IMG/VR virus record: IMGVR_UViG_3300048571_000088
Coordinates: 1 to 64,000 of that record
Reading direction: 5' to 3' (one strand)
Length of the DNA stretch: 64,000 nucleotides
The position numbers were made by a program, and so were the translations under genes. Below the pieces are notes generated by a model. It was given only the letters and a program-made list of their open reading frames with translations, had not been told where the DNA came from and searched no databases. Of this stretch, positions 23,203-43,878 are shown one piece after another (positions within the stretch are counted from its first letter, which is position 1; every line of letters begins with the position of its first letter).

Positions 23203-23348
23203 CAGAATGTAGTATTATTTTAATTTGTTTGCCTTTAATAGGTTTTTGTGTACATACAAAAATTACTATCAACTGATTGTTAAATACAAATAATAATATT
23301 TAACACTTAGAAACTGATTTTATAAAAAAGTTGCTGTTATTACATTCT
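23203..23348 (-). ncRNA. ACAGCAA module RNA, open form (copy A)
   Basis: 5' AGAAUGUA-AUAACAGCAA ... UACAUUCU-G 3'; the cargo contains two AT-rich hairpins. Confidence 0.65.
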
Positions 23349-23352
23349 TTTG

Positions 23353-23424
23353 TCAGAGCGGATGAACTTTAATCACCAACACTAACTCCCAAGGATAGTG
23401 TATTACCATTAACATTATGTCCTA
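23353..23424 (-). pseudogene. Degenerate tRNA-Pro(UGG)
   Basis: Loop CUUGGGA and tRNA-like spacing, but mismatched stems and a non-canonical T loop. Confidence 0.5.
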
Positions 23425-23451
23425 AAATTAACAAACTCCAAGTAAATAGAT

Positions 23452-23656
23452 TTAAAATAATACTACAGTTTAAAAATATTAAAATTAGTAACCGCAAGAT
23501 TTCTTTAGTATAAAAGTTCAGAAATTAATTTTAAAATTACCTTTACTAACTACGTTACCGATTTAGTAGCCTTCCGTATTTAAAAGAGCAATTTCGGAAA
23601 CCCCTTTAAAAATCCTCTTAAGCTTTTAATATTTTTAAACTGTAGTATTATTTTAA
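23452..23656. repeat. 33-bp perfect inverted repeat enclosing 139 nt
   Basis: TTAAAATAATACTACAGTTTAAAAATATTAAAA at 23452-23484 and its reverse complement at 23624-23656. Confidence 0.9.
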
Positions 23657-24625
23657 CAAATTCATCTAAAGATCTACCACCAATAATTAATTAAAATAGT
23701 ATCACCTAATTCAATCCCTAAATCCTGTTCAATAAAATACTGAGCAATAATAGGGAAATCACAAATTAACTCATGTAGTGTCATTTTCCAATATGAATTA
23801 TTATACAAGTTATCAGAGTCACCATAAATTCTAGAAACTTCTTTTTGTACTTCAATAGGACAATCAGACCATTGAGCATTAAGTACCCAAGTTTTAACTA
23901 AAGCTTTTGGTGTTTCTTTAGGATTAGGTGTATCATTATGTTTATGATGATAGGAACTAGTTTTTCCACACCATTTAATTAATTGATAGCCTGTATCTAA
24001 TAGTACTTGAAGTGGTGAGTTATTATATTTTTTAATTTCTTCTAACAAATCTTTAAAAGAAATATTATGTTTTTCACTATAAAATTTAATACTTTTTGAT
24101 AATTCTTTGATATCAAAAAACTTTTCTTCAATTTCTTCAAACATACTAGAAATAAATTCTAAATCAGGAAATTTACTTAATCTGACATAAGAAATATTCT
24201 GTGTATTTTTAGGAAATATAAAACCTGCTACTTGATAGTACTTATTAGTTTTAAGGTGTTTATTAGCTTCGTCTAATTGACTAGAAGTCCCACCTGTTCC
24301 TAAATATTTAACAACAGTTGTTTTATAATTAAGAATCATTTGTTATAGAGCCTCGTCTGAATTATTAGTACAAATAGGTTCATCCCATTTCAAATGACTC
24401 CCTTTACTTAATTGATACATAAAGTCATCAGTCTCATCTTTACTAGTAACTTGACGGCAACGATGAATTTCTACATAAGTATTATCTTCATCAAAATGAT
24501 AGCAAGGTTTTCCTGTAACAGGATGAATAAAATTATCTGATTTAACAGTATTAATTTTACGACCTGATTTAAAAGGCTTCCCTGTTAATTTAATAACTCT
24601 CAAAATAAACTCCTTTATACGTTTG

Positions 24626-24698
24626 TGCACAAGGCTGGGATCGAACCAGCGACAAACGAATTTTCAATCCGCTACTCTGCCGTCTGAGTTACTTGTGC
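24626..24698 (-). tRNA. tRNA-Phe(GAA)
   Basis: Canonical cloverleaf GCACAAG/CUUGUGC, loop UUGAAAA, T arm GGUUCGAUCCC. Confidence 0.9.
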
Positions 24699-40587: not shown

Positions 40588-40712
40588 AGCAAAGGGTGGG
40601 ATTTGAACCCACGTTTCTCCCTGGAAATGGAAACATAAATATGCTGTTAATATACTTTACAGGATATATTTTATTTGTTATAGAGTATCCTAGGCCGCTA
40701 GATGACCTTTGC
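40588..40712 (-). ncRNA. tRNA body (Gly/Glu-like) with permuted ACAGCA module in the anticodon arm (copy H)
   Basis: GCAAAGG/CCUUUGC-U acceptor; D and T arms intact; insert AUAUCCU-GUAA-AGUAUAU-UAACAGCAU. Confidence 0.75.
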
Positions 40713-41470
40713 TTTTATTGATTAGTTGAATTCTAATTGAAACATTGCAGCAACGTAACAAAATTGTTGGTTGTTAGCATTGGATAATTACCTTGTATCG
40801 GTCAGGAGTATCAAATTCATCAAAATCTGTTGCATAACGACGTGGTGTATGGTTTGAAATACATTTCAAACCTTTAGAATTAAGAATGTTTGTTAATTCA
40901 TTTAATTCTTTTTCAGCTTCTAAATCAACTTGAATAACAAATTCATTTAAAACTGCATTAGGTTTATTTTTAATGTATTTTTGTAATTCAGTTACTACTT
41001 TAGATTCAGCAGTAGTTAATCTTTCAGTAGCTAATTTAACTTTAGTTGACTTGTTTAATTCGATTAAAGAGTTATACAAGTTTTCATACTCTTTCATAAT
41101 TTAATATCCAAATTCTTTGAGCTAAAGTATTTATTTAAATTAGAGTCTAACGGTCTATCAGAGAATAAATAAGTCCCATATTCATCTAATTTTTTAACGT
41201 TTAATTTTGAAAAAGTAAGACTAGTTTCGTTATACTTAACTCCGTTCATACTTGTTAAATCTATGTCGAGATTTAATTTTATTAGAATAATATGGAATTT
41301 AGTGTAGTAAGCGTTATTAAACATCATAGTCCTAACAGGACCTAATATATGAATGTTTTTCCTATCCTTAAAAGTTAAAACAAGTAAGTTATTAACAAAT
41401 TTAGTAATATCTTGACTTCGATATTTTATTTTATTATTTTTTATTTTTAAAGTATAGTTATACATTTAAG

Positions 41471-41926
41471 TTAAAATTCCTTTTGAGTAGGTATATTTTG
41501 ATCTTTAAAGTTTTCAGTATTCTTAGTCAAAGAACGTTTAACTTTACGAAGAAGTTTACTAGGTCGTTGTCTAATAGTTTCTTTAGTAGTAAAGTTATTC
41601 ACCCATTTAGGAGGTACTTGAACTAGCTTGCCACGTCTGTTTCTGTAAACAGGTTTAGAACCTTCAATTTGATTTTTATCAGCAATGTATTTATATACTA
41701 AATAAAGATTTTGTTTATAAAAAGAATATTTAACTAAATCAAACAATTCAGGATTTGTATTTGGAGTGTCTGTATAGCAAGGGTATAGACAGGAGCAAGT
41801 TTGTACAAACTTGCTAGAATGCTGTTTGTGTAAAGATTTTTTGATCTCTTTTAAACGATGTTTTGGAAGAGTTTTTAAAAACTCTTCCTCAAACAATTCT
41901 TCACATGCTTTTGAAATGTTAATCAC
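41471..41926 (-). CDS. Hypothetical protein with RRGKLV..PP.W basic module
   Basis: Shares a ~45-aa module with ORF 25789..26016. Confidence 0.65.
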   Translation of the reverse strand: MINISKACEELFEEEFLKTLPKHRLKEIKKSLHKQHSSKFVQTCSCLYPCYTDTPNTNPELFDLVKYSFYKQNLYLVYKYIADKNQIEGSKPVYRNRRGKLVQVPPKWVNNFTTKETIRQRPSKLLRKVKRSLTKNTENFKDQNIPTQKEF

Positions 41927-42976
41927 TCACTACTCCATTTAAAAGTAAGTATGTAGTACTTTCCTACAAAGATTTTAGTACTGAATGTAATTAAAGAATT
42001 AAAAGCAAAGAGGGCGCCGGTTTCATTTTTAACTTGATCTTGTTTAATCCATTCTTTAAATTTAATGTGTTTTTAATATTAAAAACACTCAGGAATATTT
42101 GAGTCGACTTTATTGATGAAAAAATCTTCATTCGTACTTATTTTAATCCTAAACGAAACTTTAAATAATAAAAATAAACCACATAAGAAGGAACACACAA
42201 CAGTGTAAATATATCAGTACTAAAAGGAAAGTACAGACTGGAACAAGATTTAACTAAAGTTGATGTAGAGGTTAGATAATAATAAAAAGTTAAAGAGTTA
42301 TCTACTTCGTTATACTTCAATACGTAAGTATACTTTTTATATGTAAACGTATATTCTGACTTATCTTTAGATTTTTTAAAATACTTAATATACTTTATAG
42401 CATAAGATAAATTTTTAAAATATTTAAAACTATATAACAAAAAGAAAATGTTTGTTATTAGGTATACAAATGCAAAAGAAAAGGGTAGAGACATTATTAA
42501 ATTCCTTTTTCATTTGCAAGTTTAAGAAGAGACTCACTGTTTTTAAACATAAGCTCTGAGAGATACTGAGACTGAAGATCTTTAATTAAAGCTGTTTGAG
42601 TTTTAATGTTTAAGTCTAGTAGTACTCCATCTAACATAACTTCAACTTCCAGTGGAGTAATTTGATTTACTGTACAAACTGAAGGGATTGATAAGTTAAT
42701 AAATGAGTCTTCATTTTTAGTCAGACTTGCGGATTCTTTGTTTGCTAAATACAGTGAATAAATAAAGCCAAGCGTGTTCTTATCTTTAAAAGAGAAAGAA
42801 GGGACTAAAGCAAACAAAAGAGGACACAAAGATAAACCTATAAAAATAATTATAAGGGTAGTTAAAAGAATCACAGGTTAAAATCCATTATGTAATTATA
42901 AAACTCTTAAGTAAGGTGGACATTATGTTTTAGTAGCTACTGAGATTGCGTAGAACTATCAGTATACCAGTAGCCT

Positions 42977-43246
42977 TCAATTTTTTGCTTCATAAGTGAT
43001 CCCGTCAATTACGACACTAGTTTGTGAAGGGTTTTTACCGACCTTATAATAAGTTGTTGTAGTGCTGACTGGACAACGTATAACTACTATTGAATTATAA
43101 GAATTACTTACTTTTTTAGCAATACAATCTTTAAACATAGGGTCACTTTCTAAAGAATTTTGATAAGAACTAAATTCCGTATGTGGTTGTGAGCAGCCTA
43201 GAAGTAACGTGGTGATTACGATGGGTATTAAGGTTTTTAAAACCAT
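42977..43246 (-). CDS. Putative lipoprotein
   Basis: Lipobox LLGC after a hydrophobic N-terminus. Confidence 0.6.
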   Translation of the reverse strand: MVLKTLIPIVITTLLLGCSQPHTEFSSYQNSLESDPMFKDCIAKKVSNSYNSIVVIRCPVSTTTTYYKVGKNPSQTSVVIDGITYEAKN

Positions 43247-43772
43247 TATAAATACTCTCTATTAATAAAAGGAGGAATCGCTGTAAAGTGTCCATTTACA
43301 AACACTAGAATAACTTAAAAACGTACCACTTCCATCTGTATAGACTTTTTTATACACAGAAAGATTTTTATAAAAAGCTGACCGATCTTTAGTAAGTTTT
43401 TTAAAAGTTTCTAAATCTAATTTAGTATTATCTGGATTAAGATTAAAACAAATAAATTGAGAAGTATTAGTAAGAATAGCAAGAGAGTTAGCTTCTTCTT
43501 TATAATCATTTTCTTTTAGAAAATTAATAACTTCATCAATCTTTAAATTATGTTTTCTCATTTAGGTACTACAATAGGTACACTTGTAGGAAAGCACATT
43601 AAAGTGCTATTAATACGTTGCTCATAAGCTTGTACACTTGCTAGGCAAGCTTGCCTGGTATTATATTGTGCAATTGGTGTACCACCATGATTAAAATAAA
43701 CTAAATTCCACATGATAATAAATTTAATCATTTTTATTAAAACCTTCTTTTAAAGTATGTGCTTACGGATTG

Positions 43773-43878
43773 TGGCAAGGGCTGGAATCGAACCAACGTT
43801 AAAATACAAATTGTATGAGTTTTAAATTTGCTGTAAGTATTCTTTACAGAATAGCATAACCAACATTTCAACCTTGCC
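43773..43878 (-). ncRNA. tRNA-like RNA with permuted ACAGCAA module (copy I)
   Basis: GGCAAGG/CCUUGCC-A acceptor; GUUGG-UUCGAUU-CCAGC T arm; insert UAUUCU-GUAA-AGAAUA-CUUACAGCAA; D and anticodon arms eroded. Confidence 0.75.

Follow-up and report, generated by a model that had tools for sequence, protein, structure and literature searches.

The stretch of DNA analysed here, referred to as the window, comprises 64,000 nt of the 242.6-kb IMG/VR contig IMGVR_UViG_3300048571_000088 and carries, within a region centred on tRNA genes, nine copies of a small RNA module (A-I) and a gene for a DUF2828/DUF7788 protein (Table 1). Minus-strand genes, Shine-Dalgarno sites and PHROG matches point to a tailed jumbo phage; the window has no near relative among the GenBank phages, and its closest relatives came from a protein look-up. 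The tRNA-centred region extends over 23-50 kb, with six tRNAs detected by ARAGORN and further Rfam tRNA matches bearing large insertions, and an Rfam scan of the window at gathering thresholds returns tRNAs only. A sequence-only reading of this DNA had placed the nine copies on the minus strand, and all are present when that strand is read. The module is likely to be the handle by which a family of small, Y-RNA-like RNAs binds protein, with the DUF2828/DUF7788 protein, a divergent Ro60-fold ring, as its candidate partner.

The module consists of 5'-(U)AAAG, an arm of 5-6 nt, a spacer of 1-4 nt (often UAA), CAGCAA, a variable body that often opens UU(U/C)AAAAC, the complementary arm and CUG followed by U or A. 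The stem measures 6-7 bp, and its open end is always 5'-A-G...C-U-3', formed by invariant A-U and G-C pairs and flanked by A(A) on the 5' side and G(U) on the 3' side. The G described earlier as lying directly 3' of the partner arm belongs to the invariant CUG. The fourth base, after CUG, is U in A, D, the capped copies and most relatives, and A in B, C and E. In copies A-E the module is open, with arms that lie far apart and would form the ends of an RNA. In copies F-I it is capped, in the order partner arm, GUAA, 5' arm and CAGCAA, with the helix end C-U-[GUAA]-A-G. Since the capped junction CUGU+AAAG is the exact joining of two open ends, F-I are circular permutations of the open copies. 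The association of the copies with tRNAs also holds: F-I lie inside tRNA-like genes, there is a tRNA body within D, C begins one base past tRNA F, tRNA-like sequences precede B and E, and A lies 140 nt upstream of a tRNA-Arg.

The heptamer ACAGCAA alone is not significantly enriched in the window (14 matches against 9.0 +/- 2.9 in shuffles). The composite motif, defined as stem, CAGCA, partner and UG, or as a GUAA-capped stem with CAGCA, occurs at ten sites on the minus strand and at none on the plus strand, and 300 shuffles averaged 0.9 such sites and never exceeded 4. It recovers eight of the nine copies, with H missing by one mismatch; the sites at 4394 and 43933 look like chance. As the strict scanner for the module selects for pairing, base pairing was assessed by a separate test not built on it, using 51 non-redundant half-sites near DUF2828 genes that were defined by sequence alone and hold 20 distinct arm sequences. 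A perfect 6-nt partner followed by UG is found for a half-site's own arm in 34 of the 51, versus 6% with swapped arms. Alignment A4 agrees with this test on the covariation of the stem that had been read from the window copies: the two outer pairs (A-U and G-C) are invariant, and the five inner pairs all change on both sides, so that 5 of 7 covary. In the same alignment CAGCA is invariant, the final A is 90% conserved and a U follows the arm in about two thirds of the sequences.

The body enclosed by the handle takes several forms: a short AU-rich loop, a look-alike of an anticodon stem-loop, a YrlA-type permuted tRNA body and, for copy D, a tRNA body whose D-anticodon-T order is the normal one. 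A hairpin with a loop of the CU-NNN-AA type is present in 8 of 39 short modules versus 2% in shuffles, and similar 5-bp stems carry the triplets GCU, UCU, UGU, GCA and GUU. These look-alikes fit a design in which a shared handle presents anticodon loops. A head-to-tail array of six or seven different open modules occupies L118:10317-10737 (L numbers denote loci), where some modules hold the look-alikes UGU and GCA, one holds a YrlA-type tRNA body, and each module end (CUGU/CUGA) nearly abuts the AAG of the next.

By sequence, the DUF2828 protein of the window matches DUF2828 and DUF7788 only in Pfam, with no Pfam TROVE match and no PDB match. Its AlphaFold2 model, built with 56 homologs, has a mean confidence score (pLDDT) of 93.5 and a predicted template-modelling score (pTM) of 0.92. 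The kinship with Ro60 first proposed from the letters is supported by this model, which matches Ro60/TROVE over its full length: the top 12 Foldseek PDB matches are all Ro60/TROVE proteins, followed by vWA domains only. The Ro60 matches have E values of 5e-10 to 1e-6, TM scores of 0.5-0.6 and about 520-570 columns, and comprise Xenopus Ro60, complexes of Ro60 with misfolded pre-5S rRNA, D. radiodurans Rsr and the Ro60 of Thermus phage phiLo. In the vWA domain, the metal ion-dependent adhesion site DxSxS is invariant in the family (D289, S291 and S293). The predicted structure assigns the DUF2828/DUF7788 protein, with high confidence, a Ro60 fold made of a TROVE-like helical-repeat ring and a vWA domain. 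The DUF2828 family numbers more than 5,900 homologs at E <= 1e-5, its domain is reported in plants, and no RNA partner for it is described in the searchable literature.

The link between module and gene was examined in 53 unbiased loci, namely 16 viral contigs, whose DUF2828 proteins are 32-36% identical to that of the window, and 37 bacterial or metagenome-assembled genome (MAG) loci obtained by a genome scan with a 12-sequence alignment. In 14 of the 16 viral and 12 of the 37 bacterial or MAG loci, the strand of the DUF2828 gene carries a strict open module no more than 1 kb away from it. A covariance model built from 25 modules (R1) adds L011, L198-L200, L203, L214, L219, L221 and L225 to these, and L014 is the only viral locus of the 16 that has no module within this distance. 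Module density near the DUF2828 gene is 26-fold that elsewhere across the 53 loci, and all 45 R1 matches in DUF2828 loci are on the gene strand. The co-occurrence of module and gene foreseen from the window is found in distant viral and bacterial or MAG loci. The module stands just upstream of the gene in some lineages and just downstream in others (L002, L004, L005, L007, L010 and L017), often in arrays of two or three. Closer relatives of the phage (L226-L228, 65% identity) retain syntenic orthologs of copies D, E and H.

A reverse test was made with loci fetched solely by a 16-mer from the RNA. Fifteen of these contain a true module, and ten of the fifteen encode a DUF2828 protein; those ten genes start about 10-65 nt, mostly 12-16 nt, from the 3' end of the module. 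As a finder, the 16-mer scan of viral sequences was rejected, with mostly chance matches in AT-rich DNA, yet it supplied this reciprocal test. The pattern CCTGTAAAGG...WCAGCAA was also rejected, with about 105 of its 116 matches being chance. The neighbours of DUF2828 genes include Pnkp, Hen1, RNA ligases, PTH2 and a PP-loop enzyme. In L229:8317-12196, RNA ligase genes flank the DUF2828 gene on both sides, an arrangement that ties it to RNA repair more closely than is seen in the window.

In the known Ro60/Y RNA systems (Rsr, YrlA/YrlB, Yrn1, phiLo Yrl1/Yrl2), the protein combines a ring-shaped TROVE-like domain with a vWA domain, as does the predicted fold of DUF2828. In both systems the protein gene has one to several small RNA genes as immediate neighbours on its own strand, and the stem is closed by the RNA's 5' and 3' ends, with a conserved single-stranded motif by the 5' arm. 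Each locus encodes at least one RNA with a tRNA-like body in the order T arm, closed acceptor and D arm, and RNA repair genes are neighbours in both. Y RNA genes adjoin Ro60 genes, and the Ro60 of phage phiLo binds two RNAs encoded upstream of its own gene (PMC12135203). A review of jumbo phages describes, in general terms only, a ROT/TROVE protein with a tRNA-like partner. The tRNA-like domain of bacterial YrlA consists of a T arm, a closed acceptor-like stem-loop and a D arm, and M. smegmatis YrlA is cleaved by RNase P and gains CCA (PMC4201824). The same three elements can be read in modules of the relatives L083, L118, L202 and L090. The Rfam YrlA model (RF02553) matches the long modules of L083 (33.6 bits) and L118 (32.5 bits), over the tRNA-like part only (positions 23-87) and below its gathering score of 69; the window has no YrlA match. 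The D-anticodon-T orientation of the body in copy D is the one described for D. radiodurans Yrn1.

The two systems also differ. DUF2828/DUF7788 is not Pfam TROVE and shares 11-19% identity with the solved Ro60s. The phage RNAs, whose two ends are AAG and CUG(U), carry the motif (U)N(A/U)CAGCAA in place of the Ro60-binding motif GNCGAAN0-1G of the Y RNA 5' strand (PMC4201824). In alignment A4, GNCGAAN0-1G is absent and CAGCA(A) is invariant instead, in keeping with the initial remark that the motif is unlike the canonical Ro-binding stem. Some phage members are capped inside complete tRNA genes, and some are bare anticodon-loop look-alikes. The partnership of a structured RNA with the DUF2828 protein, the core of the sequence-only reading, gains support from the predicted fold, the gene linkage and the YrlA-type mimics, from which we infer that the protein binds the RNA and that the pair represents a new variant of the Ro60/Y-RNA system.

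The capped copies extend this likeness into tRNA genes. The pattern of an embedded copy, in which a capped handle and CAGCAA are followed by a T loop, occurs in 11 viral and 23 metagenomic stretches, amounting to about 20 distinct genes. In each gene the insert measures 41-48 nt and sits within the 5' strand of the anticodon stem or immediately after it. Without it the gene regains a 5-bp anticodon stem and a 7-nt loop containing U33, as seen for about ten independent tRNA scaffolds (G, H, L147, L286, L351-L354, L360, L364, L370 and L371), and the restored anticodons include Pro UGG in window gene G, Arg UCU in L286 and Asp GUC in L353 and L354. One interrupted scaffold (L371, L286, L353, L354 and L364) appears with the anticodons UCU, GUC and UCA, the last of which would read UGA if decoding. 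Running ARAGORN on all possible deletions proved too permissive for insert boundaries and was replaced by an explicit stem-restoration parse. The order of elements in the embedded genes (D arm, partner arm, cap, 5' arm, CAGCAA, T arm) is that of the YrlA-type RNAs, the sole difference being that the handle is capped and the acceptor open in the former, whereas the handle is open and the acceptor closed in the latter. F-I are tRNA-shaped RNAs with free acceptor ends and a Ro60-type handle at the place of the anticodon arm, an arrangement that the phage encodes directly, with the GUAA-capped handle and the anticodon stem-loop kept alongside.

Gene F matches the Rfam tRNA model at 46.2 bits with a 52-nt insert, and ARAGORN, with introns allowed, reads it as tRNA-Pro with a 47-nt insert. 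In gene G the insert splits the 5' strand of the anticodon stem, and the restoration parse yields CUAUC-UUUGGGA-GAUAG after its removal; the scaffold recurs in L351, L360 and L370. The acceptor stem of gene G, CAGAACG/CGUUCUG-A, resembles the module arms with a CUGA end, and R1 aligns across it at 27 bits, which may be fortuitous or reflect a shared origin. Module H has the variant CAGCAU and one stem mismatch, its gene is restored as CUC-insert-CC with GGGAG (read from the sequence), and its ortholog at L226 4341-4470 has a perfect C-[UGUAAAA]-G cap. The scaffold of gene I recurs in L356, and a comparable design with a degenerate D arm is seen in L346-L348.

Among the open copies, A scores weakly with the covariance model owing to its long body, and C contains an inner hairpin with a CUUUUUA loop. 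In copy D the stem of the module replaces the acceptor stem of the enclosed body, which comprises a D arm, an anticodon-like arm and a T arm; positions 30614-30675 correspond to positions 6-65 of the Rfam tRNA model, and the ortholog lies at L226 11754-11878. Copy E had been placed at the ribosome-binding site of the DUF2828 gene, and its CUG indeed lies 17 nt before the start codon with the Shine-Dalgarno sequence in between. This layout is repeated in eight other loci with gaps of 12-16 nt to the start codon, and suggests that copy E is a candidate operator, acting through translational feedback on DUF2828, and/or an RNA processed from the leader. A leader role cannot be the sole one, as the RNA lies downstream of the DUF2828 gene in other lineages. 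The 5' arm of copy E has two pairings, one with CCUAAU just after UCAGCAA, which places the motif in a 7-nt hairpin loop, and one with the distal CUAAUCU. The relative L226 retains both, and the alternative pairing may act as a switch at the DUF2828 ribosome-binding site.

In the mechanism proposed, the RNAs would be transcribed with the phage tRNA clusters and then cut out. The handle, a 7-bp helix with single-stranded CAGCAA 3' of its 5' arm, would attach to the DUF2828 ring in the way that Ro60 is bound by Y RNA stems, with the variable body hanging from the inner end of the helix; in F-I, the GUAA-closed handle would project from the anticodon stem of an otherwise complete tRNA. By analogy with Ro60 and Y RNA, the RNA may tether or gate the ring, and the body may show a tRNA- or anticodon-shaped surface to tRNA-binding proteins. 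The targets of this surface could be host anticodon nucleases, towards which it would act as a decoy, or the phage's own repair or modification enzymes, for which it would act as a scaffold; RNA quality control would be an alternative use. Binding of the protein at copy E, on the DUF2828 ribosome-binding region, could feed back on translation. As a purpose, anticodon-nuclease decoys working with Pnkp/Hen1 are plausible by analogy.

Several observations weigh against a Y-RNA-like handle for DUF2828. About half of the bacterial and MAG loci have no module, even by the covariance model, and all but one of the nine window copies are 3-14 kb distant from the DUF2828 gene. Most embedded copies elsewhere have no DUF2828 gene in the short stretches examined, which is uninformative rather than contrary. 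The canonical GNCGAAN0-1G is missing from the module, the analogy with Ro60 rests on a predicted fold where the DUF2828 sequence has neither a Pfam TROVE nor a PDB match, and the preserved anticodon stem-loops also fit true introns. In this last account, the capped copies would be a new class of tRNA intron or mobile insertion, 41-48 nt would be removed and the halves rejoined by Pnkp and the ligases, the free-standing copies would be related or released elements, and DUF2828 would be a cofactor or a binder of the excised RNA. It draws on the perfect anticodon stem and U33-containing loop restored in about ten scaffolds, the conserved size, structure and position of the insert, the CCA encoded in some genes, the one scaffold with three different anticodons and the presence of Pnkp/Hen1 and RNA ligases. 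A parallel exists in the non-canonical tRNA introns and permuted tRNA genes of archaea and red algae, where an insert also lies in the anticodon stem, its removal restores the cloverleaf and related RNAs are circularly permuted; no bulge-helix-bulge is seen in the phage inserts, and the setting here is bacterial or phage. Inspection revealed neither bulge-helix-bulge nor group I features, and no endonuclease candidate was identified. The restored stem could, moreover, form around an unspliced extra arm, the module is far commoner free-standing by DUF2828 and with YrlA-type bodies that need no splicing, and the embedded copies share the exact connectivity of those bodies. An intron is, on this evidence, unlikely.

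It is more improbable still, to the point of being hard to sustain, that the module is a cis signal only, serving as an RNase processing or stability mark in tRNA operons and as a leader element of DUF2828. Such a signal would account for copies that abut tRNA 3' ends, for AAG and CUG(U) ends conserved like cleavage sites, and for copy E and its eight relatives 12-17 nt from the start codon. It would not account for the six lineages with the module downstream of the gene (L002, L004, L005, L007, L010 and L017), for arrays of two to seven different modules with elaborate tRNA-like bodies, or for a capped form inside tRNAs without free ends, and a tight link to a Ro60-fold gene is unexpected for a generic processing mark. 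Chance resemblance in AT-rich sequence, or a repeated promoter or terminator, is consistent with the unenriched heptamer and with a promoter scan at background, but is refuted by the pairing test, the linkage density and the composite-motif count, which gives 10 sites on a single strand where 0.9 are expected. The module is also conserved with covariation in dozens of unrelated contigs, and most copies have no U-run after the stem. Readings as a self-cleaving ribozyme or a k-turn were set aside, with no match to their consensus cores in an informal comparison.

The module was initially taken to resemble no described family, and this has to be revised: in a permissive Rfam scan, the Dictyostelium Class I RNA model (RF01414) aligns B (29.4 bits) and C (24.0 bits) end to end, over positions 1-56 of 56, albeit below the Rfam threshold. 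End-to-end matches also occur in three other phage contigs, L147 (26.8 bits), L019 (26.5 bits) and L118 (24.2 bits). Five independent matches to a single family among 4,227 are not chance. None of the five modules, from four phages, reaches the gathering score of 41.5, and given these scores and the phage host, the module RNAs are not filed as members. The consensus of RF01414 comprises a stem GaUcuC, CUUACAGCAA, UUAAAAC..., a stem GagAuC and UG. According to Kjellin et al. 2021, Class I RNAs are ~60 nt long, start with AAG and have a 6-bp terminal stem of variable sequence in which pairing is kept; the C of a conserved 3' CUGU is in every case the partner of the 5' G, an 11-nt motif with near-invariant U3, C6, C9, A10 and A11 lies beside the 5' arm, and no Class I RNA was found outside Dictyostelia (PMC7919456).

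The phage module has each published sequence and structure feature of Class I RNAs (B 56, C 60 and E 38 nt). The two share a length of ~40-65 nt, the AAG start and CUG(U) end, many gene copies per genome, a motif by the 5' arm (CUUACAGCAA in the Rfam consensus, CU/UAACAGCAA in the phage) and an AU-rich variable body often opening UUAAAAC. They differ in that the module occurs in phage and bacterial rather than amoebal genomes and has a stem-to-CAGCAA spacing about 1 nt shorter, and the DUSE promoter found about 60 nt upstream of Class I genes in dictyostelids is absent from the phage module. In Dictyostelium, the sole known direct binder of Class I RNA is Rnp1A, a protein with an RNA recognition motif. 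DDB_G0281243, an uncharacterised protein, is one of four pulled down with DdR-21, a Class I RNA, and a literature search returned nothing describing it. The resemblance, sub-threshold and to a class without a known mechanism, does not refute the Ro/Y-like reading of the module. Tentatively, and with more doubt than confidence, the DUF2828-linked and dictyostelid RNAs may be one class, sharing an AAG-stem-CAGCAA...stem-CUGU handle for a Ro60-fold protein of the DUF2828 type. Under this reading the Y-like RNAs of the amoeba would be the Class I RNAs, perhaps acquired from the bacterial or phage system or sharing ancestry with it, and their partner would be DDB_G0281243 or another amoebal DUF2828/TROVE protein. 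The tRNA-embedded handle of the phage would then be a new kind of insertion or intron, or a display of anticodon-loop decoys. Class I RNAs, which have lacked a molecular mechanism for twenty years, would gain a testable hypothesis and a tractable bacterial and phage model.

For the DUF2828 family itself, a predicted fold and a candidate RNA partner become available, and the Ro60/Y-RNA principle would cover a second family of proteins, which seems to be much larger and whose recognition motif differs. One ribonucleoprotein design would be encoded in permuted forms, even inside complete tRNA genes, which offers a clue to a possible origin of Y RNAs from tRNAs. The display of tRNA or anticodon loops on a protein ring by RNA repair genes is a testable idea for how tRNA-directed attack by the host may be countered or repaired.

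Table 1 Module copies, tRNA-like genes and protein-coding genes located in the window.
Feature	Position	Strand	Description	Basis
Copy A	23202..23350	-	Arms AGAAUGUA/UACAUUCU; CAGCAA at 23336-23331; ~120-nt AU-rich body	Sequence and strict scanner
Copy B	25427..25485	-	56 nt; directly 3' of a weak tRNA-like sequence, 25483-25560	R1, 49.8 bits
Copy C	26376..26438	-	60 nt; begins one base after the CCA of tRNA-like gene F	R1, 52.9 bits
Copy D	30596..30719	-	Encloses a tRNA-like body	R1, 34.3 bits
Copy E	37680..37720	-	Minimal, 38 nt; UCAGCAA variant; orthologs in L226 and L228	R1, 34.8 bits
tRNA-like gene F	26445..26563	-	Module F, 26494-26520, at 5' side of anticodon loop; CCA encoded	
tRNA gene G	27839..27958	-	Module G, 27895-27920, in a 47-nt insert	Rfam tRNA, 45.7 bits
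tRNA-like gene H	40588..40712	-	Module H, 40641-40667, in 5' strand of anticodon stem	Sequence
tRNA-like gene I	43773..43878	-	Module I, 43828-43853; degenerate D arm	Rfam tRNA, 25.6 bits (sub-threshold); R1, 31 bits
tRNA-like gene	37735..37843	-	35-nt extra arm; directly 5' of copy E	Rfam tRNA, 38.3 bits; fold z-score -3.2
DUF2828 + DUF7788 gene	36191..37663	-	490 aa	Pfam, PHROG
Pnkp and Hen1 genes	46255..49888	-	RNA repair; Pnkp is a kinase-phosphatase-ligase	Pfam
PTH2 gene	33477-33917			Pfam
PP-loop ATPase gene	35449-36093			Pfam
Class II aminoacyl-tRNA synthetase-like gene	31289-31996			Pfam
NADAR gene	30724-31296			Pfam
RNA ligase gene	5273-6331		Farther from the tRNA-centred region	Pfam

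The tRNA-centred region of the window also contains TelA (Pfam). A promoter and terminator scan of the window stayed at background level and is hence uninformative on transcription units. Two tRNAs with the anticodon CAU, at 29813-29898 and 44461-44549, have an extra variable arm of 11-13 nt and a total length of 85-89 nt; such an arm is unusual among tRNAs of the Met/Ile2 type. The TTG start of the open reading frame listed at 43886-44551 is probably wrong, since it overlaps the second of these tRNAs. Among the tRNA genes, three stretches of non-coding DNA measuring 200-320 nt (23350-23673, 28084-28298 and 29900-30116), free of Rfam matches and of the module, may be further small RNAs, and a repeated element AAAUCUAUUUACU...GAGUUUGUUAA is shared between the sequence around 23100 and that around 23450.

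Phage relatives carry IS605-family TnpB (Cas12f-like) genes at L226:376-1539, L229:6871-7929 and L229:14032-15144, and none is seen in the window. The 3' ends of the first two give weak matches to HgcC-family RNA, which are probably their guide RNAs. The window further encodes a pair of NAD salvage enzymes at 54604-57059, a nicotinamide phosphoribosyltransferase and a fusion of nicotinamide mononucleotide adenylyltransferase with Nudix; together with the NADAR gene, this pair suggests that the phage also handles NAD depletion or ADP-ribosylation.

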